Assembly: GCA_048013815.1 (NCBI GenBank)
Contig: CM106585.1
Span: forward strand, 16,058,001-16,122,000
DNA: 64,000 nucleotides
Direction of reading: 5' to 3'
From: Setoptus koraiensis
Lineage: Eukaryota > Animalia > Arthropoda
The translations under genes and the position numbers were made by a program. Below, in pieces: positions 19,284 through 44,666 of the stretch (position 1 is its first letter; the number at the start of each line of letters is the position of its first letter). The notes beneath the pieces were generated by a model. The model did no database searches. It had not been told where the DNA came from and worked only from the letters and a program-made list of their open reading frames with translations.

Positions 19284-21697
19284 TATCTGGCATGTGTGTG
19301 TGTGTGTATGCGATCAGTGTCATATTACTGGACCACTTGAGGAGTTACTAGTTCACACTGGTTGGTGTCTCAAGTGAAAATTGGAAAACTTTTCAGTCGC
19401 CTGTATGTGTCTGTATGGACGAGTATCCGCGGGCAACGGTTGCGCCAGTGGACATTTGAATTGTTTAATATCGCACATCTTAAACAACCAACTCGAACAG
19501 CGGCGGCTCAAATGGACAGCGTTATTTAATTTGAATACACGAACAATTTTAGCAAATCAAGCTAGACAGCGAGAGAAAATGAATGTGTGAAGTGTGCTAC
19601 GAATGAGCGTCGTTATTGCGCAATCGATTAGAACTGGAGGATATATCACACGCAATTGTAATATTGAGCCAACATTCAACAGGTGCAACATACTTGTTGA
19701 GATTATTGCAACTTGCAACAGATTGTTCAGCGTCGAGCGTTTTGGTTGGTGCTTGACCAGCCAAAGTAGGCACATTGGCTGTAATTGTTGAGACTGAGCG
19801 GCTGAGTTGCTGAGTTGACCGCTGGCCAGTGGTCAGTGGTCACAAGACTGAGCGGCGGCCAGTGGCGAAAATAAAGTACATATTTCATAAACGAAATATG
19901 TGCAATGATATTCAGAGAAGCAATTGGCAATTTCGCAAAGACGAACGACGAAGAAGCGAGAAACAATTCGTTGCGAACACCCAACAGTCAACCGCCGGCC
20001 GCGAGCCACAAAACGAGATCGGGCGCCAACCGACAGATTAACAAGTGCCTTTAACGAGGGCCGCTATCAACCGGCGTTTCAAAACAACATTCGTGTCACC
20101 GTGCGCCGACCAGGCACCACGGTGCCCCCTCCCCCGCCCGATGCCTGCAACCTGTTGCAACTGGCCGGGCAGCGCTGGCAACGAGACAGGGTCAGACGGC
20201 CGACGGCGGCGGCGGCGGCGGCGGGCAGAGGCGGCAAGAGGAGAAACTTTTCGTTGGCCGTTACGCAATCCTTGTTGTTGTTGCTGTTGCTGCTGCTGCT
20301 GCTGTTGTCAGTGTTGTTGTTGCTGTCATGCAACAAAACTAGCAGCAGCATTGTTGCAGCAGCGACAAGACAACGGCACAATACCGTTACTTTGTGTGTG
20401 TGTGTGTTCGTACTCCAACAGTGTGTGTGCAACTGACAGGAGCGAGCTTGCCAGTGTGCATGACGCAACAGCTTGACGGCTGCATCACCTGACGGGGCAA
20501 GAGCATTCGCGGCGCCAGGCAACAGTAACAAGAGCGCTCGACAATAGGACAAGACGACAAGCGACAGTTTTCAGGTAGACAGACGCGCTCGCTCGCATTG
20601 ATAATTTTCGGTCCGTTAATGGCACTTGTCGACGCCAGCAGCAGCAGCATCTATACACCATAATACAAGCGTATAATACCAACGACACAACGGGAGCCCA
20701 ACGGACAGCGCTCGGTTTTTGGCCAAAGTCTCAACAAAGTCAACATAAACCAATTTACAACCAACTCAAATAAGTGCTCGCAACAAATATTCAAGACAAG
20801 TCGCCGATTGTGCAATAGTCAATTGCGCCCATCATCGATTAGCCCATCATCGATTGGGCAACAGCATCATAGGCAACGGCCCTCTGTTACATGATAATAA
20901 TATCACCTTGTTGTAACATCATCTTTGCGGGCAAGTTGATTTTTGCCGCCGTTAGTTGGCCCTGTAGTGCATTAGTAGTGGTGGCATTATCATTGCCAAT
21001 TGAGTGCTTCAAAGTTGCATCACTGTCACAACTTGTGACACTGTCAAAAATAACCGTGTCGAGCAACGGTCACTGGCAAACTGCTGTCCGCACACACACC
21101 AAGCAACCAAAGTAGCCCAATAGTGATAATTAGAGTAGAACAACAAGCGGCCTTGGCAACAATTGTGTGCATCGCATTGAACGGCCACCGATTGCATCAC
21201 TTGTTTTGGGCCTGCGACGGAGACAACATCAATTAGCAATTAGCTGTCGCTGTTCCTCCTCACAAGCAGCAGCAGCAACAACAACAACGACAACAACAAC
21301 GACAACAACAACGACAACAACAACAACGACAACAACAACGACAACAACAACGACAACAAGCAACGAAAAGACTGGAAAATGATAATGTTCCAGTTGCAGC
21401 AAACAAACTAATAGAGCATAAAGACTAGAGAATATTCATATTGTCACTAATTAACTGCTGCCACCACTCACACAGCCAGTTGGCGACTCACTTAGGCGGC
21501 CAATAACTGCTGGCTCAGTGTGACCTTGTTGCTGCTGCCGCACCGATGTTTTGTTGTCGTGATTTTCTGGCCTCGTCTCGTCACTGGAGTGGCTAGTTGC
21601 TCAGTTGTCCAATTCGAGGCTGTGTCAGCAGCGCAAAATATACAATAGCGCAAAATATCCACGACCATATATCGACAACCATCAATTCGGCCAACCT

Positions 21698-21763
21698 GCA
21701 ACCTGACAGCGGCCAGCAAGCAACCCGACAGCGGCCAGCAAGCAACCTGACAGCGGCCAGCAA
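21698..21763. repeat. 22-bp minisatellite x3 (gcaacc[t/c]gacagcggccagcaa)
   Basis: Direct reading. Confidence 0.9.
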
Positions 21764-22288
21764 GCGAACGCGCCCAAATGTTAGCCGGTGGCACTGTCGC
21801 CAATTACCAATTGTCAGTCAGCGTTTGTCATCATCGGCATGATAATTGCGAGCATCAATCCGACCTGAGCAAGCAAACAACAAATTGTATTAATTGTTGC
21901 CGTAATCAATCCGCAAACAATGGTCTCGCCGACAGCAATCACATCATGTGGGCACTGTAACGGTCAGCAGTCGAGACTGGCTATGAAGCCGTCGAAGAGA
22001 AGGAAACGAAGAAAAGACATACTAGTGTACAACGAGGCCATTTCATGCAGTATCATTCGCGCAAATTCTAATCACGTAATAAATCAGAGCCGCTTACACA
22101 CAACAGATCGACAACGACACAATAATCAACAGCAACACTGCCCACGGGCGTGTTCATTAAATTCATTCATGTTTCCTAATTATAATTATAAATCATCAAT
22201 TAACGCGACCATAATATGTTCACATGACAATAGCGACACAAATACTCGCCACTCAACACAAACAAATATCATCACAACGGCCGGCAGC

Positions 22289-22346
22289 ATGAAGAGGAGC
22301 AACAAGTGGCACAAGTTGTATTTGTTGCTGCTAATTGCAATCATAG
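22289..22346 (+). CDS. Exon 1 (signal peptide) of a giant secreted low-complexity protein
   Basis: MKRSNKWHKLYLLLLIAII (basic n-region plus hydrophobic core), followed directly by a consensus donor G|GTAAGT at 22347 (phase 1). Confidence 0.75.
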
Positions 22347-22498
22347 GTAAGTAGACACACAAACATAATTTAATGAGGCGACTGACAAACTAGATCTGAT
22401 AAGGCAACCGACAAACTAGATCTGATGAGGCCACTAACAAACTAGATTTTGTAAACTAACGAACCCGATCCTCTTTTGACAAACATCGCTCGCAACAG

Positions 22499-23142
22499 CT
22501 GACAATTCACATGGCGCCAACTATGCAAACAACAACGACGACAGGCCAAACGAGCATGCAAACTATAATCACAATCAAAATTCCATGGCGTCTAGCTCAA
22601 TCGGAGAGAGTAGCAATCAGCGGTTGGATTCAGCCAGTTCATTGGATCATGCACACGAAAATCGTCATGGCAAAGACGACAACAACAACAACAGCGACAC
22701 TACGGCCTGGTTATCGTTGTTAAACAGCTCAAGCAGATTAAGATCAGACCCGGCCAAGGCCTCTGCAACTACACTAAGCGACGGCCACAATAACAATGGC
22801 ACAACAGCAGCAACAACACCAGCAGCAACAACAACAACAACAACTACGACAACGACAACAACATCAACAAACCATGATGCTAGTGCAACAACCGAGCCAA
22901 CAACAAAAGATGATGATGATGACGCAACTACTGTCTATGCGATTAATAAGGTGTTACACACAGGCCATAGAGGCACACAGGTATCTGGAGCGGTATCGTA
23001 TGACGATATTGCAACAACAATCGCTCTTTCAGCCGCTAGTGCCGCTAATCAGCAGCAGCAGCATCACGACATTCAAGACCAACAACAACAACAACAACAG
23101 CAACAACAACAGCAACAACGACAACGACAACAACAGCAACAG
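22499..23142 (+). CDS. Exon 2 of the giant secreted protein (Thr/Gln/Asn/Asp-rich)
   Basis: Branch-like ACTAAC (~22455) and CAG acceptor at 22496-22498. G+CT gives Ala, in frame with the 22585 ORF. The exon ends CAG|GTGAGT (phase 0) at 23142. Confidence 0.75.
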
Positions 23143-24850
23143 GTGAGTTTTTTCATTTTCAATTCAATAGCCAATAATGAGTGGAGGCAAATCAATTGCA
23201 ATCAATTGAGTTGTTGGTCTTTTGTAGACGAAACCAAAGACGAGAATAGCTGCCCGGCCGCTTGCCGTTGAACGTTGATCTCTCGAGAGTTGCGAGTCAG
23301 AAGGTCGGCGCGGCTTGATGAACTTGCAGCAAAAAGACAATATGTCACTAGGGTTACTTTCGCCCTCTGCTGCTGTCAATACGACAGTTATATATATATA
23401 GCGCGCAACATTGGAGCACTGGACATGGCACAAACACAACGGGGCAACCCAGATCAATTGTTGCGACTTTGTATTTGTGGCCATTGTGACAAGTGGGCCA
23501 CATTATTATTATTATTATTATTATTATTGCTGTTGTTATTATTATGCTGATCGGTGTGCGTTCGGTGTGGAGCTCATCAATGGCCAGTTATTTCGCCATT
23601 GATGAGCCATCGAGTGTGTACGCACTGTGACAAATGACAATGCCAGCGTCAGCTGACCAGCATCTTTTGACAGGCCCACCAATGACCAATGTCACTGTCA
23701 CTGCTGTCACATTGACAAAGAGCCCTGGTGACCAGTGGTCACTGTCACCTGAGTGCCGCACACAACAGTCTGTTTGTGCGCCGTGGGCAGCTTGATTGCG
23801 CAGCTTGCGTCATTTATGCAAATAAACACACACACACACACACTCACATTGTGACACTGAAAACACTGTTGCGCAATGGTAGCGACACTCAACTGACCAA
23901 CTGGACGCCAACGAGTTTCAAACTGGCCAATTAACTGGCTGGAAAATAAACAAAATTTCAAGTGAGCGCTTGCAAATATTTGTCTCAGTAATTGTTTTAT
24001 GTCGTCCGAGCAGCCGACCGAGTTAGCTCGGCATAGTGCATAATTGTTGCTGGCGCCATTGTCGCAGCCATGACACAACACACGACACAACACACGACAC
24101 AACACACGACACAACACATAATGTGACACATGATGTGATACATGATGTAATATTGTGCCGCATTCCAGTGCAGTATTACATCATACATTATGCAGCGTGC
24201 GGTGTTAGACATCGCATGCAGGTGAGCACATATCTCACACTGGTTAGACACTGGTGCCCAACTAGTTATATTTAATTGCATCTTGGTGTTGTGAGTGTGT
24301 CCAATGGCAGCGCTCAGTTAATTTGATTAGAGCTTAGATTAGATTTGAGTGGAATGCGCATTGCGTCATATCTGTGGGGCTAACAAGTTTTGAGAGGTCG
24401 CAAAGACTCTGCCAAAGACTCTGCCAAAGACTCTGCCAAAGAGACGACAAACGATGAAAGTAAACAAACAAACGGCCGTGAGACAGATCCAGTGACAGTA
24501 GACAGAGCGAGACACAGTGTGCGGGGGAGAGCGAGAGTTCTCATCGAGATATGACCAACAAGACGCCAGCGATGACCCAAATGTCATCTGGTGCAAACAA
24601 ACTGCATTCAACTCTCTCTGTCTCTCTCCGTGTGCGACTTTCCCGATCACTGACAGTTCACAATTTGAACTTCATAACTCGAAATATCCCAACATCGTCA
24701 GTCACATATGTATGTATAGCTATAACTGTCATTGGGTAGACGTATTGTCACTTTCTTCTCACACACTCTGGCTGTCGTTACATTTATACATTGTTTGTAT
24801 TCTCAGCGGCTCGGGCTAATTGGCTCAGCGACGAAAATGAGCTCGCTCCC

Positions 24851-24950
24851 AAAAATGCCCGCCACTAAAATGCCCGCTACTAAAATGACCGCTCCCAGAA
24901 ATGGCCGCCACTGAAATGGCCGCCACTGAAATGGCCGCTACTAAAATAGC
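24851..24950. repeat. 15-bp minisatellite x~7 ([a/g]aaatg[g/c/a]ccgc[c/t]ac[t/c]); three copies contain GCCAT(TT) YY1/Pho-type sites on the minus strand
   Basis: Direct reading; the motif match is from the known YY1/Pho consensus. Confidence 0.85.
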
Positions 24951-26585
24951 CGCGATGGTCGCCACGGCGACCCCATCACTCATAGCCTATGAGTCATAGG
25001 CCATGAGCCGGCCACGGGCGCCAGCGGCGCGGGTTGGCACGTTGGGCGGCGGTCGAGGGCCGCCAGTCGCAACTGCCGAGACTCTTGACTCAAGAGCGGA
25101 ACGGCGCTCAGGGGGCGCTCCCGGCGAGAGAGCCCGATATCGAGAGGGCCCGATATCGAGCGAGACCGTTAATTGGTCGATTGGTTAATTGGTGCGTCGG
25201 TGCGCCAAAAAGAACTGACTGCAATCGCTGGGGCTGAGTTTTTCGGGCTCGGGCTCGGCCCGTTTGCATATGCCGGGCCAGCGGTATGTAAAGCGTGCCC
25301 GGCTGTGTCAGCTTGCTGTCAAATTGTTGGACGGCGGCGCTTCGAATGGCCGACCAACTATATTGAATATATCATACTGACTGTATGTGTATAGTGGATA
25401 CACTATGGCCAATATCAGTAATCAGCAGTGAATGCTTGATTGAGTTGCTTGATTGGTGTGAGAATAATCTCGTCGGCTGCCGATCAATACAGCCGCTGAC
25501 TAGTGCTGACTAGTGCTGATTAGTGCTGATTAGTGCTGATTAGTGCGGCCGCCGACGGGCCGACATGCGAGCCGACTGACCCCTGCCCGCATGCAGCCAA
25601 CAGGTGAGTTGGCACCAGTCGAGTTGGCAACAGGCGCACAGGTGAGCATGTGAATGGGCGAACAGGTGAACGGGCGCACAGGTGAATATGTGAATAGGTG
25701 AACATGTGAGAAGGTGAACGGGCGAACGGGTGAATGGAATTGCAAATTGGCCAATGGACGCCGCCACACTCGATCTGTATTTATTTAGACCACCGGCCGA
25801 TAGACGCCGATACCTGTAAAGTTTACAGTGTAAACTGGACAGGGCCGGTTCCGGTGACGATGCGGCATAGGGCACGGGCAATGGCGGGCAACAATGCTGC
25901 CGGTGTAAGCGAATTGAGTGGCGCCACAGCAGCAAGCTGGCCGAATCGGCTGGCCGGATCAGCTGAATTGTCGGGCCGAGTCAGCTGAATCGTCAGGCCG
26001 GATCCAATTGTCGGCGGTGAGTCACAATTGTCAGTATCGATCTGACAGTCAGCTGACCGTTGACAGGGGCTTGTGATCGAGTCAGCGCAAACAGTTGGCC
26101 TTGTTAATGGACGCCACTAATTCAATTGCCGGCGTTCCAACTGGCCGGCGCCACACTGTGCCGGCCAGACCGGTGAGAAGCGGCAAAAAATGCCACTGCC
26201 ACTTGCCCACAAGCGAGTCGCAACAAGCGAGTCGCAACAAGCGAGTCGCAACAAGCGCGTCGACAACAGGAACAGGAAAGTCTCATTATTGGCTGTCTGG
26301 TCGGTGGCGACGCCATTCTCAAGTTGAGAAGCCGCCGCGCCGCAAAGTGGCGCTCGTTTGTGGCCGACAGCCGCGAGCCGCCAGAGAAGCGCCAGCACAA
26401 ACAATGGCCCAATCAATGCGCGGCTCGGCCGCGATTGGCGATGCTCACTTATCATCGCCGATTCGCCAATATCCGTTTCTGGTCTCTGATTACGTAATTG
26501 ATGCGCGGCTCCGTGCGGTTCCGTGCGGCTCTTTGCGGTTCCGTGCGGCTCCGTGTGGCTCAAGTGTGATCGCCAACTGGACTGG

Positions 26586-26648
26586 ACCGACCGGCGGACT
26601 GACCGGCGGACTGACCGGCGGACTGACCGGCGGACCGACCGGCGGACC
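26586..26648. repeat. 12-bp minisatellite x5 (gaccggcggac[t/c])
   Basis: Direct reading. Confidence 0.9.
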
Positions 26649-28905
26649 GCACAGCCAAGTGCGGCCGATGAGACGGGGCGGGCGGCCATGCACAGGCGCG
26701 TATGACGCAACAGGTTGTGATTTAAATTTAAATTTAACCGCTGCTGGCCGGTGTGTGCCAAACGCAACTGGACAACGATGCGCTTCACGGTCAATTTGAC
26801 AATTGAAACCAAATCAGCTGAATGGAGTGGCCACAACAAACAATATGAATAACAGTGTTTGGCTTCTATTTTTGGCTTGTTTGTTGTGCTGCCACCGGTG
26901 CTGCCAGCAATCGGCGTTGTTGTTGCAACTCAAGGGCTTGTTAAGTTGCCTTCGAAATCAAATCAAACCGAAATCGACCCGCTGAACCGCTCACAAATTT
27001 GCTTGCGTCTGTTTGCGTTTGCCTGAGTTTGCTCAACAAGTGGCCACGTCGAGCAAATTCAGTGCCAAGCCAACAAAGCTGGCCAACGAAAACACCGCAT
27101 TGTCCCGAGTTGCCCAACAACTGATTGTGTGTCACGTAATCGCTTGCACAATGTGTTGCCGGCCAACGCTGGCTGACTTGCGGCCGGCCCACAGGTGAGC
27201 TCGCCGTTGTTGTTGTCGCTGTAGCCGCCGTTGCCGTTGTTGCTGTTGTTGCCGCTGTTGTGACTCACAACTTGTGAGATGAACGAATTAGCATCAACAA
27301 AGGAGCTGCGAGCGACGGCGATGCGGCCACCGCCGGCGCAATCATTGCATCTCTATCGGCTGCCATCGCTGTCCGCTGGCGCAACAGCAACAACACCAGC
27401 AACAGCGACAGCGACAACCGCTGCGAGTGTCCCCAAAATGACCGCTGGTCCGCCTCTCGATGGGCGCCTTTCGAATTGAAAGTTTCAATGGCGATCCCCG
27501 TCGCACGATCATGTAAATGTGAACGCAACATGGCCAATCGCGACAAATAACCGCTCTGGCGCTGGCTTGCGCCCGGCACGCCGACCACTCAAGTCGCCAA
27601 TTGCAACAATTTGCATAACACTTGTCCCGTTGACCACTGGCCAACTGCAGTTTGGCCAGCAGCAAATTGACTGGCCAGTTTTGGCCAAAGCGGCGCCACT
27701 GGCCACTGTGCAAGCCTGTGTATAACTGCCACTGGACATGAGTCATGTTACATGACTTCCGTCGCCGTGTTACGTAACTTTTGTTGACGTTGAGTAACTT
27801 TTGTTGACGTTGAGTAACTTTTGTTTGTGGCCGCAGTGCGGCGGCAACGCACACGTAACGGCCACAAGTTACGTTTGTGTTTGCGTTTGCGGTCCGGCCC
27901 GCCGGACGCTTGATGCGCTGGCCAGCCGGAGCACGCCCGGCCATGGTTGACCGGCCGAACGGCCGGCTGACCCACCGATCGACCGGCCGAACGGCCGGCT
28001 GACCGACCGACCGGCTCAAGCGACATTCGCGGAGAGACTGACGTTCACTGCGGCCCATCTGACAATACGATTGCAGCCCGTGGGCGCGTACAGTGATGAC
28101 AGTATCGGCCAAACAATCGGCGTACCCACATTGCATCGCATTGATGCGTTCAGTGATGCAAGCGCCAGTGGTCAGCCGGCAACTGGCCATTGTGCTATAA
28201 CGGTTATGCTATAACGGTTATACTATAACGGTTGTGCAATCTGTCATGACAGCGATCTGCGCAGCGCGCACACCAGATTGCATAACGGATTGCATAACAA
28301 ATTGCATAACGGATCATGCTTATGTGCGGCAATCCAATAAACAATATAGCGCAACAGGTGACTGTTTGATCTGTATCTGGCAACGTTGTCTGGTATCGCA
28401 CTTGCGGGGGTCGTTGAACTGGCCGGCCACATTGCACTGTCACTTGTTGCGCTCGCTCGGTCTACCGACACACGACAGCGGCGATATTGCCGGTTGCTGT
28501 CGGCTGTTTAAACTGACGGCTGGTTTAAATTGACAGCTGATTCGAATTGACGGCTGGCTCAATTCGACAGCTGATTTGAATTGACAGTTGCTGTGTTGCG
28601 TGCCATTGTCAATTGTTGCAGCGATTGACAACGATGCGGCGATAAACAAATTCCTGCTCGCTGCTGTGGCGTGTTCCAGGCAACGCGCATATCTGCACAA
28701 AGTTTACTGAACAAGTTAACTGAAAAAGTTAACAACACCGATTGGCCGATTGGCAATATCAAGTGGCGCGATCGAGAGTCATTGGCAATTTTCGCCCACT
28801 ATTGTTTACATTTGGCATTTCGCCGGCTCGTTCGGCCGCCATTACGCAAGAGCCAGCGCGGCCGCCATAAAGCGAGGTGAACGATTTCTCCAGAGCATCA
28901 CCTCA

Positions 28906-28908
<3 letters not shown>

Positions 28909-28958
<50 letters not shown>
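28909..28958. repeat. (AC)25 microsatellite
   Basis: Direct reading. Confidence 0.95.
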
Positions 28959-28960
<2 letters not shown>

Positions 28961-29352
28961 ACGCTGCCGCCACTTATGTAACCGCTGTGGTGATACGATG
29001 GTGATTATGTAATAAAATGATAAGCGCTTGCCGTACTCGAAGTGGCCAAGTGGCTGACAGCGAACAAGGAAATATGAGTTGCGCCACTGTAAACACTCGA
29101 CATGCCCAGTTGACAGCTACCGATACGAACAGCTGATGTTGACAGCAGCATGACAGATGACACGGCATGTAATGAGTTGCAGTCACAACAGCGCCACTTT
29201 CTCGATCACACTGCCAACAGCGTGATCGCCAGCAGCGACTGGCGCCAGTCGTCTAGTCACTGTTGACTACTACTGTCAAATGTCACGTGAGCCGGCCGAC
29301 GTGGCCCTATCTGCCAGTGGTTGTGTGGCGCAACAATTACGCAACCCGCAAC

Positions 29353-29412
29353 ACTCTTACGTAAGACTCTTACGTGAGACTCTTACGTAAGACTCTTACG
29401 TGAGACTCTTAT
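29353..29412. repeat. 13-bp minisatellite x4.6 (actcttacgt[a/g]ag), alternating A/G and so forming a 26-bp higher-order unit
   Basis: Direct reading. Confidence 0.9.
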
Positions 29413-29942
29413 GATGAGAGCCAGATAACTGTTTGTTGTCGATGCTAGCGCCGAGCAGCCCAATCGACAGAATCAATTCTGGCAGCATTTTGGCAGCACA
29501 AACAAAATTTGTGCAGCAAAATTTGTCACAATTTTGCAAAATTTTGCAATTTTGTGACAATTTCGCCGCATTGATCGGCTTCGGCGAGCATGGCATGCCT
29601 GATATTTGATAGTGAGAACGCTTCGCTCGGCATGCCAACGAGCGTGTATGTCCGGCGTGTGTAATGAGCGGCTTCGAACGGCGACACACTCGTCTCGTTT
29701 GCAGCAAACGGTTTGCTGACAACAATTTTTGCAAAGTTGACATCTAGCCGCTTGCTCGGCACCTCCGAGCAGCCTCGACAGCCTCAACGACATGATCGAC
29801 ACACATTGCATGCATCTCCGAGAGTGAAAGCGCCAATTGGTGTACACCTAGCGAGCGGTGCACTCAACTAAATATGCTACATCGGCCATTATTTATTTAC
29901 CATGTGTTACAATTTTATATTGATATTCACGCGTGAATGTAG

Positions 29943-32900
29943 GAACAGTACACAACGAGGAAGAAACGGCTCAGCAAACTTGACTTGAATCATCCTCATG
30001 TGGCACCTATTCAGCCGCAACATAAAAACTTTGCCACCAACCAAGTGCCCACTACTACACCGGCGCCACCTCTCGACAAATTGTTCACCGGAACAGTGGA
30101 TAGTGGGCCCGCAGTGGCGGATATTCGAGAGCCGTTGCAGCCGTTGGATATATCGCAAGCTGCAGCGCACCACGAGGGCCCACGAACGGCAGCGCCATCA
30201 GAAGCCGAAGTAGCAGCAGCAGCAACGACAGAGACGGCAGAGCGATCAACTAACAGTATAGTGCCAAACAAGGATTACAACGCAACCGGAAGTGAGCAGC
30301 ATGCTAACAATAATGTCAACAATGCGGCCGGATACACCAAGCACCGGTCGACGCCTAGCGACGGTGGCGATAATCAATTTAATTTTGCCTACGGCGATCA
30401 TTTGGCGGCCAGTAACGGCACTGCAACAAACAATGACCATGGCGCCATTGCGACAAACAACAAAACAAGTGACATCGTGCGATCCGGCGACCAGGGCCCC
30501 CCGCATCATCAACATCAGCAGCAACAAGTGTCCGAGGACTGGTCATCGGGGCAGCTGGAAGGGGGCTACTATCAGCACGACCATGGCGGACACACGACAA
30601 ACGGCAAAAGCGCCAACAACGAGCTCGATTTGGACAATTTTCCACTGGATGGGTACCAATTAGCCGAAAGTGACCAGTCCGCTACCATTGCGGATAAAAA
30701 TCGCCATCAACGGACACCGGACGACGCCGACGACGACAACATTGTGTCCTCGAGCTCGTTTGCCTCCATGGAAAGGATTCAACCGACAACGTTCGTCAAC
30801 AAAAGCCCACAGTTTGTGTCCAGCGATGGCCAGCGAAATACCACTTCCGGCCCATCGAACTCAAACCTGACCCTGGTTGGCGGCCGTGCCGGGCCCGAGT
30901 TGATACCCATCACGAAGCCGTTGGGCGCGGTAGAGGGCGCTGATGATGATTCAGAAAGTTATAACAGTGCCAGTAGCACCCATTTGCCCCACTATTACCC
31001 TAGCTCCCCGACATCGGGTTATCACGATCTAGGCGGCTTCACAATGTCGGCCACCACCGAGGCCACAAATCCGTGGATACCCACCACTCTAAGCGTGGAC
31101 AATGGCGCCAGCACAACGTCCGACGGCCAACTAGACGGCGAAACTGAGCCGGCCCCAACGGGCGCCAACACCGACGTCATGCTGTCTCAATCCTCTGAGC
31201 GCGCATCGTCATCGTCCCAACTAACGTCTGTCCAGCTGACCACTTCCGGTCACACTTCTGTCAGCAGCAACAGCGGTGGCGCCATGCAACACTGGCCGCT
31301 CTCAACGGTGAGCCCGGCCGCCCACGACGATCAGTTGGGCTTCGATCAAATCACTTCTCCAGTCACGACGCCCGTCAGCGCCCTCGTAGACTCGCCCAGC
31401 GTACCGGCGTATGTCGGCGCGCCCTCTAGTGAGTCAGCGACAACAACCATGCTGAGCAATGACATCGCCACAGGCTACAACAACGGATCGGCCATCAGCA
31501 ACTTTTGGCCCGGCGGCTCGGGCAGCGGTGATGCAAAGGCGCACGATGCGACTCGTATAGCGGGCCAAAACACTTCCGGTTCGGCGACAACACAACCCAG
31601 TTGGTCATCGCTGGACATCAGCGGCAACGATTCTGTCAGAAATAGTGATCACGGCGACAATTTGCTCATCGCGATCGGCTCTCAGCCGGTGTCGGCCAGC
31701 GACACTCAGTCGAACGGGACCCGGGCGGCCAGTGGCGCCGACGGTGCGGCCACCACGACCAGGCCAGACGGCGGGCAGCAGCAGCCGCCACCGCCCACAG
31801 AAAGTGACAGTTCCAATGATACGATCGCACAACAGAGCGGCTGGGTGGGCGACCGCAACTACTTGCCCGTGGCCGCCGTCACCACGCAAACGCCCGTGGT
31901 CGCTGCGAGCACGGGCGATCCGCTCAGCGGCGCCGGAAGCGCCGATCAAGACGAAATGGGTGTGTCGTCATCGTCGCCGCTAAGCGTTGTCGTGTTCGAC
32001 AACGGCGGCGCCGGATCGCCGCCGCCGTATAAGTACGCAGAAAATCCGCGTCACCTGCCCAACTATGGCGCTGTGTTCGGCGTGCGCAAATCGCCACTGG
32101 GCAACTCGTCTGCGTTGCAACTGACAGTTGCAAAGCAGCGATTTTCTGAGCCTCTGGCCATGGTGTCCGACAATGAGCTCGGCAACAACAGCAGCAGCAT
32201 CAGATCTCAGAGGGCGCCGGCGGCGGGCAGCGACCTCGGGCCGGACAGAGCGCCGAACTCGGGCGCACGCAATGAATGGCGCGAATCGTTGTCGCCAGTG
32301 CATCACATCAACAATCTGGACAGCGGCGGGGGCGCCGGTCTCGACACGGACACGTATAAGACGTCCACTGGGGCAACAACTGGCGTTGAGCAGCAGCGAC
32401 AGCTGGCGACAACAAGCAACAACAACAATGTCAACAACAATGACGATCGGGGGGCCTCGATTACGCAATCGAGCACGCTGGATCAGCTGGACAACACCGG
32501 AAGCAGCGAGCATGACGGCAACAAACAATTAGCGCCACCGTCGCCCGTAGGCGACGACGACGATTTTGAGCCATCTGTTGGGCCCGATGAAGCGGCCAAC
32601 AAGAAGCGCCAGCAATACTATTTGAGAGAACCGGAAGTAGCGGTTGTGCCGGCCAGCAGCAACAGGTCGGCGACGCCGGAACAGGCTAGACAGAGCAAAC
32701 AAAACAAGACACACAAACATAGCTATGTCTGGGGCAAGCGCGCCTCCAACAGTACCGACCGGAAGTGGACCGGTGAGTCGGACAAATCAGCACTGCGACC
32801 AAATCAGTTAGGCTCAGCGCAGGCCGACGCCGCTCGGCAATCCGCTTACGACGAAAGCTCAAGCGGCTCCGACCAGGCAAACGCTGACCATCATCACAAG

Positions 32901-35900
32901 TCGCCCTCATCGGGCGACTATTTTGTCGGGGGAAATAACGCGGGACAGTCACTCGTTCAACATTCAGACAGCAATAATCTGGACGGTAGTTTTTACACAA
33001 ACGATTGGAAGGGAGTCAGCACCTTAAACAATTACTACAATGTGTCAAGTGCGGCCGAACGGCACACCCACTCGGACGACACCGGCCCGCTGTCGGACTC
33101 GTCCGGAAGTGACTCGCCGGCCCGCGATGCAATGGCGCATCATACCACACGAGCGCCAAGCTCGCGACTTTTAAGCAGTCGCGTGCATGTGTCGGGCGAC
33201 ATAATTATATCGACAGCGTCGCCATCGTTGATGGCCAACAAACAGTGGCAGACCAAACAAAAACCGGCCACAAGGGGGCGATCGCACAGCGATAGGCTCG
33301 ACGAAGACCAGGCCGGCCCGACGGCGGCCGAACCGGACGAGCCGGGCCCCAACGAGCCGACCAACAGGCAGTATAGTAAACAGGTTGCAACAACAAGTGG
33401 CGACGACAACGCCGACTATGATCAGGTCTCGCCGGACAGTGACGCGCACAAGCGACCGAGACAAGAGAAGCGACAAGCGAATAAGAACCACGGGACCCGT
33501 GACTCCGGTCAGCATTCCAAGGCGGCCCGAAAGAAGCACAATCGCCTTGTGAGCGGCGACGAGGAACAGCAAGCCGGCAACGGGCCCGATGGCGCCGATC
33601 ATCCGGACGAACGAGGCACGCCCAATCGGGGCCCGACAACCAAACAATCGCTCAGCCGGCCTCAATCCAGCAATCAGTATCCAAATGGCGAGCGCAAATA
33701 CAACAGGAAACAACAGGAAGCAGATTTTGCGGGCCGGGACGCCGACCAACGGGCAAAGCAGCATCGGGCCAACGAGTTCGAACTGAGCAGCACCGGACCG
33801 GGCACCGCAGTCAGGTCGCCCGGCAGCGCCAACAGCAAGCAGCAGCAGCACCATAGTGAGGCACCCGGTGACACGCCCACCGGCCAGGAGTGGTCGGCGG
33901 GCGATCAAACGGAGCCCGAATCGATGGGCACCAGGCAGAAAGAAAATCACAACTACGGCTCTCAGACCATTGGCGTTCGTCTGGAGCCCAAGCTGCCGCC
34001 CACTATAAGCACGCTGCGCATTGTCAACGACGACTTTGCCCGCGAAAATCCGTCGCCGGCCCGCAGGCCGCCGTCGACATTTCCGGCGCCCGCACTGGAC
34101 GAAATGAATCTCAAATTGAAACAGCTGGCGGCCGAAAACAAGCAATCGGAGGCGCGTCGCCAGGCTCGCCAGCCCCAACAACATCAGCCGAGGCGCCACC
34201 TACAACGGGCCAACAGAAACGACACCAGCGGTCGGTACGGGCAACCGCCGCACCACACCGAGATGATGCACCGCGACGAGTCGGGATCGCAGCCCTTCAA
34301 GATGGCCGCGGCCGGAAACAAGTACCTGTTGCCGCGGCATCAGCTTATGCAGCACAACCCCTTTCAGCAGCATCAGTCGAGCGCGCCCTATCCGCAGCAC
34401 AGCGTGCACTACGGCCACTGGCAACCGGGCGGCCAGCCGCGACCGGTGCCCGGCGGCCAATATTACCCGGCCATGCAGCACAAGCAGCACCAGTCGCAGC
34501 AGTTTTACGGTGCGCCGGCGGCGCCAAACAGTCGCCCGCCGCATCACTACGGGCACCCGCAACAGCCGGCCCGACAGCCGCTTGCCAGCTACATGCACCA
34601 AGCGGACAACTCGCAAATCTTTCAACAATCACTGCAAATGGAATCGGACTTCCAGCCCATCATGGGCCAGCCGCACCAACACCAGAATGTCGTTCAGCAC
34701 AACAGAACCAACCACAACCGCTATTATGCGGTTGCGCACAACAATCCGCCGCAGCACCCGTCCGCGTCCGGCCCGACCATGGTTCAGTACAATGTGAGCT
34801 CGCTAGAGCCCATAACCGTGTACAATCCGCAGCCCACCTACGAGGAGTATCTCGCCGTCCAGGCGGGTCCTCCGCAACAACCAAACCTAGAGCCGTCGGG
34901 TCCTATCGGCCAGCCGTCGGACGACGACAATCGGGCCAGGTATCACGCCGCAAGTCAGGGCACCCGATTGAATCAAGGCTACGATCAGCAGCAGACCTTC
35001 ATGAGCGCCGGCTCGCCCGATCGGCAGTACTCTCAGATTCGCGATCCGCCGCCCAGATACCCGATGGCCGATGTCGGGCCGGCGCGGCCCGTCTACGGTC
35101 ACAGCCAACAGCAAGCGGACAGCCAGCGCTACCAAATAGCGACCATATACGACAACAAACCGCAAGTGGATCAACAGGGCGAACAATCGGTCAACAACGA
35201 CAACAGGTGGTCGGTGTCCACATTGCCCTACCCGCCGGCTGCGCCCCGCGCCAAAGAATACTTCACCCAGTACAAGGTGCTGGAATCGGGGCCGGCGCCG
35301 CCGCCGCCGCCCATGCTACTCAATCAAAGTCCCGCAGAAACGATCTTCGGACCGGCTCCGCCGGGCCAACAATTGGCGGACGGTCAGCCCGTCAGATATG
35401 TCCCGTCAACGGGCGCCAATATGGCCGGTTACGAATATGCAAACGAATACAGTCAGCCGATCGACCAACAACAACTATCGCACAACAACAAGCAACCAAA
35501 CATCTATCAAGCCTCGGCAACAAATATCGCCGACAAGCCGCCGCACGACCACTACCCCTTGCCCGTGTATCACCAGCAGCCGCAGCAGCAATACCCGTAC
35601 CCGGCACCGCCGCAATACGACGCGCCGAGGCACCGCCCGCCACAGTATAAGCACCAGCAGTCTTACCAGCAGCAGCAGCAGCAACATATGAGCAAGGCGC
35701 CGCCTCAATACCAGCCGATGCACCATCAACAGCAACAACTGGGAGATCCGGGCCCGAGCGGTCAGGCGGCCGACTACAGCGGTCAGCATCAGCCGGTTGA
35801 GCACACGGGTCTGTCGTCCAACCGGAACATTGTGCAACAGAACAGCAACCACAGCGGCAATAGAGCGCGGGATCCGCAATCCGCCGCGTTGCCGCCCACC

Positions 35901-38900
35901 GACGGCGCCCCCAAGGTCAACGAGCCGGCCACTGTCACCGGGCCCAATCAGCTGTTTTGGGAGGCTGCGGTTGCGGCGGCCGCCGCCGCCGACGAGGCCA
36001 ACAACCCAGGTCAGCAAAGCCGCAAAAGCAGGGCACCGCCCTCCAACGGTCACCATCCGCCCCAGCATAGGGTTCCGCCGCCAATACCGAACGGAGAACT
36101 GCCGGACCAGCCGCAGAATAATCCGATGCCTACGAGCAGCGGTACCCGAAGTTCCTATCAGCGCCCGGCCCAGTACAAGCCGCACAACAATAATGCGGTG
36201 ATGCACCAGCGCAGGCCAATGAGTTACCCCTATCAGACTGGCGCCTCGTCTAGCGTTTCGCCCTCGCTGGCCGGCGGCACCGCACACACCAACGGACACG
36301 CCTTTGCCGGCTTGCTGAATATGGCCGCTCTGGAGCGCTCTCTGTTGCCGCATTACCTGGGCTCCGCCAGTGTCATGGCGCCCAGCTTTCTGCCCATGGG
36401 CATGTCCGGCCCGATGGACCCGTTGGATTCGCTCAATCAGCAAGCGTTCAACATGGCCGAAGCCAGCCAATCGCTTCAGGCCGACGGACAGCAGCAGCCC
36501 GTAGTGTTGCCCGGCGCGTCGGGTACGTCGTCCAGCGGCGACGAGCTGCCGCCCCCCGCGTATCAATTGCAACAGGCGGGCCATTTTGCGGGCCATTCTC
36601 CCGCGGAGATGGCCGCCGAGGCGTACCGGCAATTCAATTTGCAACAACAGCAGTCCATTGGTTTGAACGCGGCCAGCATGACCAACGGGCCCGGCCAAGG
36701 CACCGCCAAGCACCCACAGATCGCGTCCGGGTCGCTGAGTGGGGTCGATCTGCCGCTGGCCAACCCGACCCTTGTGAGCGATCCCTTCGGGTGGCCCTTG
36801 GCGTACGGAAGTGACGCCGCCAAGGCGCTGATGAAGATCAATCACGTGGCGCCAGCGCCGAGCTATTTGTTGCCCGCCGGGGCGGGCAAGAACGGAGCGG
36901 GTGCCGTGGGTTCGTTGTCGCTCGAATCGGGCCGCCATCAGACCATGATGTCGGCCGCGGCGGCCGCAACGGCCGCTTTCAGCGCAAACGCACTCGGTCA
37001 GCCGCACGGCAGCTATTTCGATCACCAGATGGACGCGGGTTCGGGCCACTACATGATCTCGCCAGCGCCGCCCATGATTCATCATCACGTGCATCATCCG
37101 CAGCCGGGCGTGTTGCACGTGCCGCTGTCTACCCGACCGCCAACCACCCGACGACCGCTGTTTTGGGGACTTTTCCGGTCGCGACATCGCCAAACGAAGC
37201 GTCGAACCGGCGCCACCAACCAAGCCGACACAGCGTCATCATTGGCCCCTCTGAACAACACAACGGCAATCGGGGGCAACCCATCGGGGGCGACAAAACG
37301 ATCGGCTAGGCGCAAGCGCAACGTGCTGAGCACAATATGGAACAGTTTCAACGGGGCCGCCGGAAGTCGGTCCACGCCCGCCAACGCTAGCCAACTGGCG
37401 AACCATGGCAAGACAATGGTGCAAATGGGCACCAATTTGGGCCAAAATCAAAACATTGTCAACAATCAGCCCATTTTGCATGACTTCGAATCGTTGCTCA
37501 TGTTCGACGACGATCAGCAGCGGCCCGTGCAGCTGAACGGGATGCCGCCAGTGACGGGCACAAACCGGAATGGGCCCTCTACCGGCCCGACGCCGCTCAG
37601 AACCAGCAACGACAACCGGCCGCAGCAGCTGCAATTGTTGCGCGACCAAGACACCCAGATACAGAGCTACACGCGCGACATGATGAGCGATTCGGGTTTC
37701 AACATGAAAGACATCGAGTCGCTAGAGCGGGACATTCTCAGCTCGGCTCTGCAAGTCAACGCGAACGCACACGAAACCGGAAACGGAAACAAGCAAGCGG
37801 CCACGATGATGTCGCCGGCCACGGCCGCCTCCGTTCAGTCGGCGTTCATTCATCACGAGCCCGCTGTCGGCAACATTGAGCCGCCCGTCAATGTTCCGCC
37901 CCAATACAGGCAGCAGCAGCAAACGCTGGCCACGGTGCCCAGTTCGCCCGGCGAGGCACTCAAAAGTTTCTCTCGGGCCATTCTCAGAACGTCGGGCGAG
38001 TCGCTGTTGAATTTGCGCAAGGTCACCAATCAGATATTTGCGCCCAAATTGTCCGCCCAGATTGCAAATCCCAAATCGCCCGTGCCCACAAATCACTCGC
38101 AAATGGGCCCCGAAGAACAACTTCTAGGCACAAATTCTAGGGATTTTTCAGCCAGGCAGCAGCACATGCAATTCAACAACAACACGCCAGCGGCGCCCCA
38201 CTTCAATTTGCCCCTCATCGACATCCACACAATGCCCAACAACAAACCCTTCACTCACTTACAGCAACAGCTGACCGCCTTGCCCGCCGAAAGTCTCATG
38301 TTCAAGGTGGCCACCGGAAACGGCGCCCAGGACAGTCTGTCCGTTTTGCCGCTTCATCTTGATCTCATGACGCCGGCGCCGCCGCGACCCGTAATAGTAA
38401 ATTCCGTCAGCCAGGAGGCGGTCAAATATCAGCCACAACAGGTGTACCCGCGAATGGGGCCCAAGGCCAGCGTCAAAATCAAACAGCTCGACAATATGAC
38501 GCCGCCCGCTGCCGGCACGGGATCGATCGGGCCGGGCACGACGTCGTCCATAATGATGCAGCTGATAAACTCGATGGCGGCAGCGCCGCAGCAAAGCGTT
38601 GCCGCCGCAACCGGCCCGTTGGTGAGCGGCCTGCTGGAAAGAAAAACCAATTATATTCTCAATCCGCACAGGAGCACCGAAATCTATCGGCCCGTGCGCC
38701 TGATTCGACCCGGCCAACGGCGACCTCCAAATCGGCATCGGGTGCCCGCGTTCGGCATGTCGTCGGGACCCGACGACACCGCAGACCTGTTGGGTGTGAC
38801 GAGTCAACAGGTGGACCACGAAATGCCTCTCGTCGCCAGCAACAACATGAGCACAGTGGCGGCAACAAGCAAGTTTGACAACATTGGCGCCTCTAATGCG

Positions 38901-41060
38901 ACCAGCGCAATACCACCGGAAGTGACGCGCGATACCATGCGGGCGGCCGCCAATCAGCGCCACGATCATCTGATTTATCAGACCGACCATCAGGCCATGA
39001 GTGAGCACAACGAGCCGGAATCTACTACGCAAATAAAGCACACGTACCGGCGCAATCGGCACCATTATCATCCGCCCGGGTATGTGCACGGTCGTCACCA
39101 TTTGGCGCCCCATCATCATCATCAGTATCCGCTGATGAGCTCGCCCAGGGGCCAGTACAGTTTGACGGGCCCCAATCAGCGTCAGATCATGGAAAACAAC
39201 GGCAGGCACAATGCTGCAACAGCAGCGGCGGCCCTCATGCTCGCCAGCCAAAAGTCCGGGCCTCACAGGGGCCCGCACAAGGGCTCGCAACCGGCTCAGC
39301 GGCAGCAGCAGCGCGGCGAGACAACGACAATCAGCGACGACATGGATAATCTTCATTCGGCGCAATCGTCAGCCCACGATCACATAACCTCGTTGGACAA
39401 CAACAACAACGCCAACAACAACAACCTGTTCAACAACAAACTCACCAGTGACCCGAGCACGGGCGACTTTTTGCCCTCGGGGCACCACATAAGCTCGCAT
39501 TCAATGTTGCCCTCGCATCACCAGCAGGACCACACCTACACCATTGTGCCGACGGGCGCCACGGGTAGCGGCGGTGCGCCGGGCGGTAACGGCGGCGCCG
39601 GCAATGGTCAGTATCGGGCCATCACTCGGGACACGTTCACCACAATAAACGACGTGCCCGTGCCCCACACAGAATCCGCCGTGTCGGACCTGATGCTGGC
39701 CGATCAGCTGGGCTCGGCCTCGTCTCTGAGCGAGCCCACTTCGCCCACCAGCCAAGTGGGCGCCCCTGGCGACCAGGTAACGAAAAACTTTCCAACAAAC
39801 TACAACTATGACAATCATCATCATCACTACATGCCAGCGCAGGCCACCAATCAACCTGCCGGCTTTGCGTCGGCGGGTCACTATCACCATTCGCCGCTCA
39901 TACCCAGATATTTGACCATGGCCAACAGGTTTCGTCAGTCGTTGTATCAAAAACTGAAACACAGCAACCTGTTGCCGCGCCCCTTCGTTCAGCTGGCCCT
40001 CAAGCCGGCACTCATGTCCGCGTCGCCCAGTTTGCGTTACCCGAAATTTTTGCCCGGTCAGGGTATAATAAACGCCAACGGTCAGTTGCAGCACCCGAGC
40101 TTGCACCATTATCCGTCGTACCTGTTGCCCGCGATGCAAGCCTCCGCGCAGCAGCTAGAGGCGCACAACGACCCGACCGCCGCCGGCCAGTCGGGTTCGT
40201 TCTTTGTGGACAACATGGGCCAGTTGCAAGGCTCGGGCCCGAGTGGGGCCAACGGGGGCGCCGGCGACAACAGCGCCAGCTTTCATTACCAGTCTGCCGA
40301 TGGCGACCCGTCGCTGTTGAATCAGCACGAGGCAGCGCAATTGTTGCAGCATCATCATTCGCTTCAAGTTGCCACTTCTAGCCAGCAGGAGCCCACTATG
40401 AGCATAAGCCAGCAACAGTATCAGCAGCAGCAACAGCACATGTCGGGCCAGGCCGGATCCGCGGTGCTGATGGGCGGCGGCGGCGGTAGCCCGCAATCCG
40501 CAGTTGATGCAGCCGACAGTGGCGAACTGATGGAACTGGACCCGTTGACGGGCCAATTGCGCCCGCAAAGCCACTCACTGGCGGACGGATCGTCGGTCAT
40601 GCTCAACGACACAATGCCGTCGCAACCGCATCAGGTACCCATAATGCACCAGTCGTCCCAGAGTGAACAAATAGAGACACTGGAGCCGTATTCAGAGCAA
40701 ACCGGAAGTCAGAGCAACGACTACAACGGCAACAACAACAACATTCAGCATATCAAGCAGCAGCAGCATCATATCAACGGCGACGACCGGTACAACCAGG
40801 CCTTTCAGCAGCACCACGCCTTGCTGAAGAGTGACCATCATCATCACCATCATCCGCATCAGCAGCAGCATCAACAGTTGGACGATGGCCAGCCGACGGA
40901 CGAGCATCACAGCGAGCACGCTTGGACGACAAGCTCGCAAATGTTTGCCGACATGATGTCCGCCGATCACCATCCGAGCCACTACAATCACAGCAGCAAC
41001 AACAGCAGCGCTGCTGACCATTTGAACAATCGCAACATTGACAACTATCGCACCACCACC

Positions 41061-41092
<32 letters not shown>

Positions 41093-44000
41093 CAACAGCG
41101 TGATTCAAGACAGCCAAAGCGACAACTACGACAACAACACTCTGCACTACCATCACAACAACAACAACAACAACAACAACAACAGTTTGACAAACGTGGG
41201 CAGCGCAAACGCGCAACGCCAGCGTCACATGATGCTGATAAGGCCAAATCACACGAGACTCGACATTGTCGAGATGATGCCCATTGTCGACAACGGTCAA
41301 CAAATGAACAACAATGTCAACCTGTCCGACGATTCCGGCCCGACGGATGCATCGCGCGACAACGACGCGCCCGACCAAGCGAGCGAGCAGCAGCAATCGT
41401 CCAACTACCAGAATCACCAGAACCACCAGAGCCGCCACAAGAACCAAGATTACCACATGGTTCAGGCTGCGTCGGCCAGCGCCGAAACGGGCGCCACTCC
41501 GGACGGCCAACCGGACTCTAGCGGCGCTCAAACAGATCAATCGGCCAAAAACACACCAAACGACAGCTCAGAGGCGGACCCGGAACCGGAAGCAGAGTCA
41601 GCGGCCGATCAGCAGCAGCAGCAGGAACAGCAACACGATTCTCAGTCGGGTCAACAGCAGCAAGTGTATGAGGTGAGCCAGGCACCCGCTTCGCAACAGC
41701 ACCAGCACCAGCATCAGTCCCAAGGCGGGTACGCTCAGAATGGCGCCCAGGAGGACCCAAACATCGTGTACGGACGACAGCCGGGCATGTTGCTTGTGAT
41801 GAAGCAAAATGGAGACCAAACGAGCGAGCCCTTGCAGCGGCAACCCGCGGCCGGCATAGAGTACGATTTCAGACCCGTGTCGCCAGTCGTACAGCCGGCC
41901 CGCAACAGACCGCCCGCCAACGCGCCAATGTATCAATCGACAAAGCTCAGCAAACAACATTCAACAGACAGTGGCTTCGCTGGCGACAGTGGCGACACAA
42001 ACGAGCCCAACAGGCCTGTCGCCACTGACACTCACGAGGCCTCTTTTCGGCCGCTCGTTCCCCTGGTGACGAACCCCTTGAGTTACTTGCGATCCAATCA
42101 AATGCACGGCAACTCGAAGCAGCACCGCAACAACGCAATCAATTTCAAACTGGCCAACTACAATCACAACAACAACAGTAGATCTTCCACTAGTGGCATC
42201 AACGAGGAAACAACAACAATTCAGCAGCCAGATACAGATGCCGGCACACAAAACCAGATACCTAGCTACACACTGATTGACCAACCTGTCGTAATAAGAG
42301 GCTCCAATGATGCCGAGTCGGGCGTCATGATGCCCGCTTCCGTTACTAGTAGCACGGACGATCAATACTCTGTGTTGGCCACCCCAACAAATGTCAACAA
42401 CATTACATCGGCGACACCCACGGCAACTCCTAGTGCCATTACAACAGTGACAACATCACCGGATTCATCATTAATTAACGCAAAAAGATTATACAACAAT
42501 CAGCAGGCAGCAACGGTATACGATGCTGCAACAACTGCAAGCAAACCAAAGCTGTTTGTAATTAATAACGCCAGACCAATAGTTAATATCATCACGGCCA
42601 GTGGTCAGTCGTCTAGCAACAAGACCAGTATCGGTGTTGATGGCGACGACAGCGTGAGCGGCACGGATCACAATCAAACAGTGATACACATCAAGCAAAC
42701 CAAGAAGCGCCCAATTAAGTACAAACTCATCAGTAACAACAACAACAACAACGTCAGACAGCAGCAGCACAATAACGCGAAGCATCTGGTTTCAACTAAA
42801 ACCAACGATCTAGTGACCACTACTGACCAAAATACACCAAAACAAAGCTCGCTGGACAGCAGCTCTCATACGGTCGGCAAATCTAATGCGCCAACGAAAC
42901 AATCGCCACCCAAATACGCACAACATACCTACAGCAATCACAATACTCAGGTGAGGGGTCATCATGATCCCGACAATATAAAGAATCACAATTTGAAGAG
43001 CACCAATACGGGCTCGATGGGATCTCAATCGCAACGCCACGCGACAACTGCCGCCCATTTGAATCAGCGAAACGGGCACAATGCAACCACCAACCAATCG
43101 GCCTCAATGCAACAACAACAACAAATTAGCAAACAATTGGCCAAATCTAAAATCAGATGGCAAGGCATGATTGCGGGCGAGCACGGCGGCGCCAATAACA
43201 ACAATAAGCAAAACACTAGCAGCAGTAGTGGCAGCAACAGCAATTTCACAACAATTGGCGCAACAACACCTCAGACAACCACCACAATTGTGTTGGACAG
43301 TCACGAGGTTGCCGCCTCGAGTCACCAACACAAATTGAATGGCGCCAATACCCCAACAACAGTGTCGGTTTTGAGCAACAGGAAGGCAGAGCTGATGCAA
43401 CAACAACAGCAGCAACAGCAACATGATCAGGCGGCCGGATCAAATCCTTGGACAACCATAAGCAACAACATACCTGCAATAGTGAGAATGACCAAAACAA
43501 ACACAAACGTGCCACTTCAGTCTAATCAACAGGAAGTGGTTGTGACCAATTCAACATCGCCTATGACAATGATGATGATGATGATGGCCACTACATCGGC
43601 ACAAACGCCACAGCAGAATCAGCAGCAGCAGCAGTCAACAGTTAGCCATGTCGATCAAATGAACAATGTCGATCATGTGGACGGCAACCCAATGAGCCAA
43701 GACAACGACAGCCAATTGAATCAATTGGCACTTATCGAGCAACAGAGATTGCTGTATCAGACAAACAACGACACAACATCGTTGAAATCAGCCGATAATC
43801 AGCTCAGACAAAACAGTCAGTCATCATATCAGGAGCCAATGATGACCACCATGTCTAACAATATGGAAGAGGTCACTCAATTGCATAGACCGTATGCTGC
43901 CGCTGCTGACCACTCATTCATATCACCTGTGCCAACCACTACTACTACTAGCACCACTACTACTACTAGCACTACTACACCGCCACCAACTACAACCAGC

Positions 44001-44666
44001 ACTTCTACTACTACTACCAGTACAACTACTAGTCCGGCCAATAAAGAAATGAGAGTGTTCTCCAGTTACAGTGGAGGTCTGAGGCACCTTCAACACCAGC
44101 CGGTCACCTTGAGAAGCCAACAATTGATGCAGGCGGCCTCGGCTGCTCTGAAAGCCAGAACTCGTTCATCTAGAACGGCAACTACATCATTTAGGTTATC
44201 AAATTCAAGTGCCCTCACTAGCTTGATAGCCAGCAAGGCCAATGGCGCCGCAAGCATCAGCGCCAGCCTAGATAAACAGCCAAACAAGCCGACCAACTTC
44301 CATCATCACAGCTCTATAATCAAACGCATAGACGACGGAAGTCACATTGGAGAGGCCATCACGACAGAGGAATCTCCTACATTGCCACTAACATCGCCAC
44401 TGTCCAGTGCCGATGCCGCACCCACAAACAATGAGCCAGATACTAGGTGGTCACCCAAGGATTTTCAGCACTATCTCCTAGATAAAAAACAAGATAATGA
44501 ACAACAATCCATGATATCTGGCTTCACTCCATCTATTGTATCATTCATAATACGCCCGGTCATAACAACAACCACAACTACCACGACAACACATAAACCA
44601 GACAATAGGATGAGACTCGAGGTTTCCATGGGCACCGATCAACAACAATTGATCTTAAAAGAATAG
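29943..44666 (+). CDS. Exon 3 (14.7 kb, 4,907 aa) of a giant secreted, intrinsically disordered Q/S/N/H/P/T-rich protein (~5,141 aa total); no recognisable domain
   Basis: A 14.7 kb stop-free frame, with a TGTAG acceptor at 29942 opening it in phase 0 (EQYTTRKKRLSKLDLNHP...), matching the exon 2 donor. Stop TAG at 44664-44666. Confidence 0.9.

Follow-up and report, generated by a model that had tools for sequence, protein, structure and literature searches.

A predicted three-exon gene for a giant, cysteine-free disordered protein, plausibly secreted, in the mite Setoptus koraiensis

A 64,000-nucleotide stretch of the Setoptus koraiensis genome (GenBank assembly GCA_048013815.1, contig CM106585.1, positions 16,058,001 to 16,122,000 of the forward strand; hereafter the window, in whose coordinates all positions are given) carries a predicted gene for a giant disordered protein, most of which is encoded by a single 14.7-kb exon at 29943–44666 on the plus strand. 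Upstream of this exon, referred to as exon 3, lie two shorter candidate exons at 22289–22346 and 22499–23142, which can be joined to it in one reading frame that begins with a putative signal peptide. The assembly comprises 47 Mb in two chromosomes and was annotated without RNA data (PMC11920263).

Exon 3 is almost certainly a real protein-coding exon. It consists of 4,907 codons and a TAG stop; the listing of open reading frames (ORFs) gives 29985–44666 and 4,893 amino acids counted from a TTG, the same frame being already open from 29943. Between 29943 and 44663 not one of the 4,907 codons is a stop, where the codon-position composition would lead one to expect 128; the other two plus-strand frames carry 176 and 140. 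A frame of this size could not stay open without selection, and the complete lack of cysteine (0 against 54.5 expected from composition) points to selection on the protein as well. The exon has, furthermore, a clear codon-position structure. On the minus strand, long antisense ORFs of 582, 368 and 342 amino acids occur within 33171–39365, and one antisense frame has only 75 stops, the other two having 184 and 265. We think that this is the codon-aligned frame, whose stops would arise from sense TTA, CTA and TCA codons, expectedly rare in a T-poor exon with a high GC content at third codon positions (GC3).

The encoded chain is non-repetitive and predicted to be disordered. It is rich in S, Q, A, P, N and T, with S, T and P together amounting to only about 27%, order-promoting residues to 17% and homopolymer runs to 4.2% of residues. 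Mucin-like Thr/Pro/Ser runs such as TTTPPPTTTSTSTTTTSTTTSP are found alongside large Q/H/Y/N-rich zones, and clusters of basic residues resembling nuclear localisation signals are also present. Beyond three short arrays, no internal repeats were detected at the protein or DNA level, and an origin of the exon by internal duplication was rejected; it also lacks any hydrophobic stretch strong enough for a transmembrane segment. AlphaFold predictions made without an alignment gave a mean predicted local distance difference test (pLDDT) score of 34.8 for residues 2100–3099 and 30.9 for residues 3708–4907, with no residue above 70. The giant protein contains no Pfam domain and has no sequence match in the PDB, and the initial annotation was thus right to recognise no globular domain. 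As a separate feature of its composition, the first 275 residues (29943–30767) include no methionine, about seven being expected at the protein's average of 2.5%.

The 5' border of the giant frame bears on how it is entered. The point at which the frame opens coincides with the AG of a TAG (29940–29942), giving an acceptor of the form tgtag|GAACAG, and an 85-nt AG-free, T-rich zone lies directly before it; a second in-frame AG 6 nt downstream leaves 29943 or 29949 as the exact acceptor position. The first methionine is codon 276, in agreement with the earlier description of a frame lacking a start of its own, and the 275 codons before it contain no stop, while the two alternative frames have 4 and 15 there. 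The opening of the frame at an AG, the AG-free zone and the long run without methionine together imply entry by splicing, and exon 3 is very probably joined to some upstream exon. That partner is most probably exon 2, with a signal-peptide exon ahead of it.

Exon 2 (22499–23142, plus strand) comprises 2 nt and 214 N/T/Q/D-rich codons, bounded by the acceptor caacag|CT and the phase-0 donor CAG|GTGAGT, and contains no stops (seven expected) and no cysteine. Its donor at 23143 is among only five on the plus strand of the window that match the consensus at nine of nine positions, and no other good donor within 18.2–29.9 kb closes a long phase-0 ORF containing an ATG; no alternative first exon for exon 3, with an ATG, phase 0 and a decent donor, was found in that interval. 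Exon 1 (22289–22346, plus strand) is a signal-peptide-like micro-exon encoding MKRSNKWHKLYLLLLIAII and the G of a split codon, and ends at the phase-1 donor TAG|GTAAGT. It was the sole match on both strands of the window (128 kb) in a search for an ATG followed by a basic segment, a 9-mer of strong hydrophobicity and a donor agreeing with the consensus at no fewer than 8 of 9 positions. Read by eye across the junction, the N-terminus is MKRSNKWHK / LYLLLLIAIIA, whose hydrophobic core spans 11 residues, with alanine at −1 and isoleucine at −3. A candidate TATA box, TATAAAT at 22187–22193 on the plus strand, emerged from a pattern scan some 100 nt before the ATG of exon 1 and may mark the promoter.

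The two exons are separated by intron 1 (22347–22498, plus strand; 152 nt), which has a GTAAGT donor, an AACTAAC branch-like site about 38 nt before the acceptor and a CAG acceptor, and which also holds a CCTCTTTT tract, a 51-nt AG-free zone and a 26-nt tandem repeat. These signals resemble those of two IDH3 introns of the same window (57520–57600 and 57749–57866) whose place is fixed by homology. Across the three-exon model, donors, branch site, pyrimidine tract and acceptors agree with consensus, as had been proposed for the GT-AG borders, the phases (1/1 and 0/0) match, and the joined product would total 5,141 amino acids. On sequence grounds, exons 1 and 2 are the best upstream partners available for the giant exon.

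The proposed intron 2 (23143–29942, plus strand; 6,800 nt) ends in TAG, is packed with minisatellites and becomes GC-rich at about 24.5 kb. Some 25 distinct short tandem arrays, whose periods range over 8–46 nt, can be recognised in it, and a (AACAGGTG)n array generates donor-like motifs near 25604–25642. A perfect donor at 25604 was considered as the end of a hidden exon and rejected, as it adjoins this (AACAGGTG)n minisatellite, which repeats the donor-like CAGGTG motif. Non-coding RNA genes within the intron were likewise rejected, Rfam and tRNA searches of it giving no match. GC content over about 24500–42000 is 0.55–0.66, compared with about 0.40 around it; since this hump extends over the intron with its minisatellites as well as over most of the giant exon, it is a regional property and not codon selection. 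GC3 is 0.61–0.74 across most of exon 3 and drops to 0.47 at its 3' end. Horizontal transfer or a chimeric assembly behind the GC-rich block was rejected, because the frame passes unbroken into AT-richer sequence and a HMMER search with residues 2201–3400 found no relative in any organism.

Two compositional patterns follow the predicted exon borders. Cysteine is absent from all 5,141 residues of exons 1–3, compared with six in the 123 codons upstream and four in the 42 codons past the exon-2 donor, so that the cysteine-free state ends exactly at the predicted borders and the join, as previously claimed, would drop the cysteine-containing read-through of exon 2. In the RecQ and FOXP-like proteins of the window, both intracellular, disordered stretches contain 0.43% cysteine, a rate at which about 22 would be expected over the length of the giant protein. 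The pattern fits a protein that would cross the secretory pathway. In addition, an excess of A over T (skew 0.2–0.45) is seen in exon 2 and exon 3 but vanishes (about 0) in intron 2.

Taken together, the favoured reading, which is given a probability of about 0.5, is a single gene of three coding exons (22289–22346, 22499–23142 and 29943–44666) whose product of about 5,141 residues would be secreted. Under this reading, the N-terminal signal peptide would route the protein into the secretory pathway, and the remainder would form a disordered chain of unique sequence with mucin-like Thr/Pro/Ser runs, possibly glycosylated, and His/Tyr/Gln-rich zones. With every cysteine purged, the chain would form no disulfide cross-links in the endoplasmic reticulum or outside the cell. 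Furin-type cleavage may occur at an RKKR motif (29958–29969, plus strand; residues 6–9 of exon 3) just past the exon 2/3 junction; RX[KR]R motifs number two in all against about one expected, and the site is suggestive only. The most likely role would be that of an extracellular coat, lubricant or glue material; the particular roles put forward in the initial annotation (cuticle, silk or glue, saliva or effector) are conjectural.

Several observations weigh against this model. No homologue showing a conserved gene structure was found. The basic clusters of exon 3 might just as well serve as nuclear localisation signals, and N-glycosylation sequons in the exon are slightly fewer than expected (53 against 64–67); sequon enrichment was rejected as a signal, the counts following composition. 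Exon 2 has a GC3 of 0.40, against 0.61–0.74 in the bulk of exon 3. Furthermore, the start of translation may lie elsewhere, given an in-frame opening of 140 codons directly upstream of the exon-1 ATG (21869–22288, plus strand), which has no stops compared with 6 and 9 in the other frames, contains an ATG at 21920 in good context, and carries six cysteines, a CGHC motif and a KRRKRRK cluster. This stretch is possibly an N-terminal extension or a chance opening. The remaining contrary points concern reads and contigs and are set out after the question of the start.

Were translation to begin at ATG 21920 with the same splicing, the hydrophobic stretch would lie 130 residues in and act as an internal signal or signal-anchor, giving a cysteine-containing, basic cytoplasmic head and a giant cysteine-free ectodomain, much like a membrane-tethered mucin. 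Such a topology would suit the confinement of cysteine to the putative cytoplasmic part, and the strongly basic residues before the hydrophobic core accord with the positive-inside rule; the open frame from 21869, the A at −3 and G at +4 of the upstream ATG, and a contig reaching upstream to 21358 point the same way. However, the 11-residue core has the length of a signal peptide and is too short to span a membrane, the TATAAAT at 22187 falls within this open frame and hints at a start site beyond 21920, and the stretch has no Pfam match. As the core suits a cleaved signal peptide better than an anchor, the extended start is retained as a minor and distinctly improbable rival to the start at 22289.

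At the level of reads, no run on record as RNA contains as much as 5% of the words of 22200–32199. The junction 22346>22499 is not listed among the contigs on 22200–28199, a stretch that ends before the exon-3 acceptor. One data set (X1), of even depth and with 93% of the sampled words, resembles genomic DNA. Another, filed twice (X2 and X3; hereafter X2), consists of 55.7 Mb of contigs of a type not recorded and contains 23% of the sampled words. One of its contigs, 1,367 nt long, is collinear with the genome over 21358–22724, through intron 1 and including 930 nt upstream of the ATG, and further contigs pass the exon-2 donor unspliced, reaching 24366. The depth of X2 declines from 124 through 57, 36 and 3.6 to close to zero as far as 28199; the flank at 21358–24366 is matched at 99% or better and almost nothing from 24.6–28.2 kb is present. 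Its word share allows at most a few hundred bases of 28.2–32.2 kb, so that the first 2.2 kb of exon 3 are essentially absent from it.

The nature of X2 can be argued in both directions. Its uneven single-copy depth points to RNA, and DNA is suggested by repeat-to-single-copy depth ratios like those of X1, by collinearity through a canonical intron and by a contig total of 55.7 Mb compared with a genome of about 47–50 Mb. If X2 is RNA, the abundant transcripts at the locus differ from the proposed mRNA in being unspliced or antisense, and exon 3 lacks comparable expression, which counts against the three-exon gene; if it is DNA, the sample is without the GC-rich block or differs in it. In either case X2 adds no support to the three-exon model. 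GC bias was rejected as the cause of the coverage loss, the depth not following GC, as was Hi-C restriction-site bias, there being no HindIII site in 18–46 kb. This lack of AAGCTT over 28 kb (18000–46000) may itself thin the Hi-C signal at the locus.

The X2 contigs bear on a division of the locus into two transcription units. In that arrangement, exons 1 and 2 would form a small gene continuing through 23142 to a stop at 23269, with a secreted product of about 276 amino acids, a four-cysteine tail and a 3' untranslated region to about 24.4 kb. The giant exon would lie on a separate transcript with another 5' exon; its product would then not have to be secreted and could be a nuclear or cytoplasmic disordered scaffold. 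Contigs running unbroken past the exon-2 donor, with depth fading near 24.4–24.6 kb and the beginning of exon 3 almost missing, are what this division would produce, and the difference in GC3, the basic clusters of exon 3 and the lack of any similarity between exon 2 and exon 3 are also in its favour. The same contigs, however, are unspliced through the canonical intron 1 and thereby fit DNA or antisense RNA better than a two-unit mRNA. The read-through tail (23143–23271, plus strand; 42 codons and then a stop), coding only if the donor is unused, is within chance length (P about 0.1, an estimate assuming about 5% stops per codon), the region between 18.2 and 29.9 kb offers the giant exon no other first exon, and the cysteine-free state ties exons 1 and 2 to exon 3. 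Two units are therefore considered a tentative and somewhat unlikely alternative to the single gene.

If X2 is instead DNA, its gaps raise the prospect that the frame is intact yet silent, very young or variable in presence, belonging to a GC-rich block (about 24.5–42 kb) that would be missing in some samples. In that case the interval 24.6–28.2 kb and most of 28.2–32.2 kb would be lacking from a sample whose flank is nearly identical; the loss of coverage does begin where the GC hump begins, and no RNA run containing the locus was found. Against this stand the selection needed to open and keep so long a frame and the purge of cysteine, and the depth of X2 declines gradually with no breakpoint. 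Moreover, the exon 3 frame passes smoothly from GC-rich into AT-richer sequence and runs to within 107 nt of the PNPase gene, which is not the behaviour of a chimeric join. A silent or presence-variable frame is thus regarded as very improbable, and the three-exon gene remains the preferred description of the locus.

Homology searches returned nothing that would place the protein. Word searches with the whole of exon 3 and with its first 400 amino acids yielded no relative, and HMMER, applied to residues 2201–3400 only, found none in any organism among 1.84 billion representatives; neither the ESM Atlas, queried with two parts of the protein, nor two metagenome locus scans gave a match. With no significant Pfam, PDB or database-protein match, membership in any described family was not found. 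The closest relatives of the PNPase encoded in the window come from the eriophyoid mites Fragariocoptes setiger and Aceria tosichella, at only 55–59% identity, and the neighbours of PNPase differ in both mite contigs compared. The nearest sequenced mites are accordingly too distant for a disordered protein to be recognised, so the description of the gene as lineage-specific in the initial annotation cannot be claimed, and orphan status means little here.

Comparison with known systems places the predicted protein closest to extracellular material. Arthropod mucins and mucin-like secreted proteins with proline/threonine/serine (PTS) domains share with it a predicted signal peptide, a very long disordered chain, Thr/Ser/Pro runs and an extended part without cysteine. 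However, the tandem PTS repeats of mucins are lacking (no tandem repeats, S+T+P about 27%), as are the cysteine-rich vWD, CK or CBM14 domains of gel-forming and chitin-binding mucins, and the large Q/H/Y/N-rich zones are a further difference. Caseins, SIBLINGs and salivary proline-rich proteins, secreted and disordered members of vertebrate gene families, are likewise very cysteine-poor, but at 100–1,000 residues they are far shorter than the roughly 5,100 residues predicted here, and no sequence relation to them was found. Nuclear co-regulators rich in Q, H and P resemble the protein in their polyQ/H/N runs, basic clusters and disorder; unlike it, they contain at least some cysteine, possess an identifiable domain and lack a signal peptide. 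In function, the nearest analogue of the protein would be a mucin-like, disordered extracellular chain that forms no cross-links, though it lacks the repeats and domains by which mucins are recognised.

A more specific variant holds that the cysteine-purged secreted chain would be a new kind of biomaterial protein, from which eriophyoid mites would make most of something that they deposit, for instance a spermatophore stalk, egg glue or a feeding plug. Such a role would be limited to one sex or stage, which would explain absence from bulk RNA; this reading is unlikely. The locus as a whole is best described as a real orphan gene for a giant disordered protein, for which secretion is plausible at roughly even odds. 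For now it stands as a well-founded gene prediction. If the model is true, one of the largest proteins encoded by a streamlined mite genome has probably been overlooked or cut short by annotation that relied on homology and used no RNA, and the gene would provide a clean natural case in which selection has stripped a disordered extracellular chain of 5,000 residues of all its cysteines.

Apart from PNPase (mitochondrial) and IDH3, the neighbours of the giant gene in the window comprise GMPPB, a protein with a FOXP coiled-coil (FOXP-CC) domain, RecQ, eIF3g and CK1-gamma. The FOXP-like gene is represented by a 480-aa ORF at 13556–14995 containing the coiled-coil/zinc-finger region, with no forkhead domain in the ORF and no obvious forkhead exon ahead of the RecQ start at 15917. 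The N-terminal region of RecQ (16200–16700, residues about 95–260) carries about ten tandem copies of a unit of approximately 14 residues, resembling SRNNGTDSFTNNYH.

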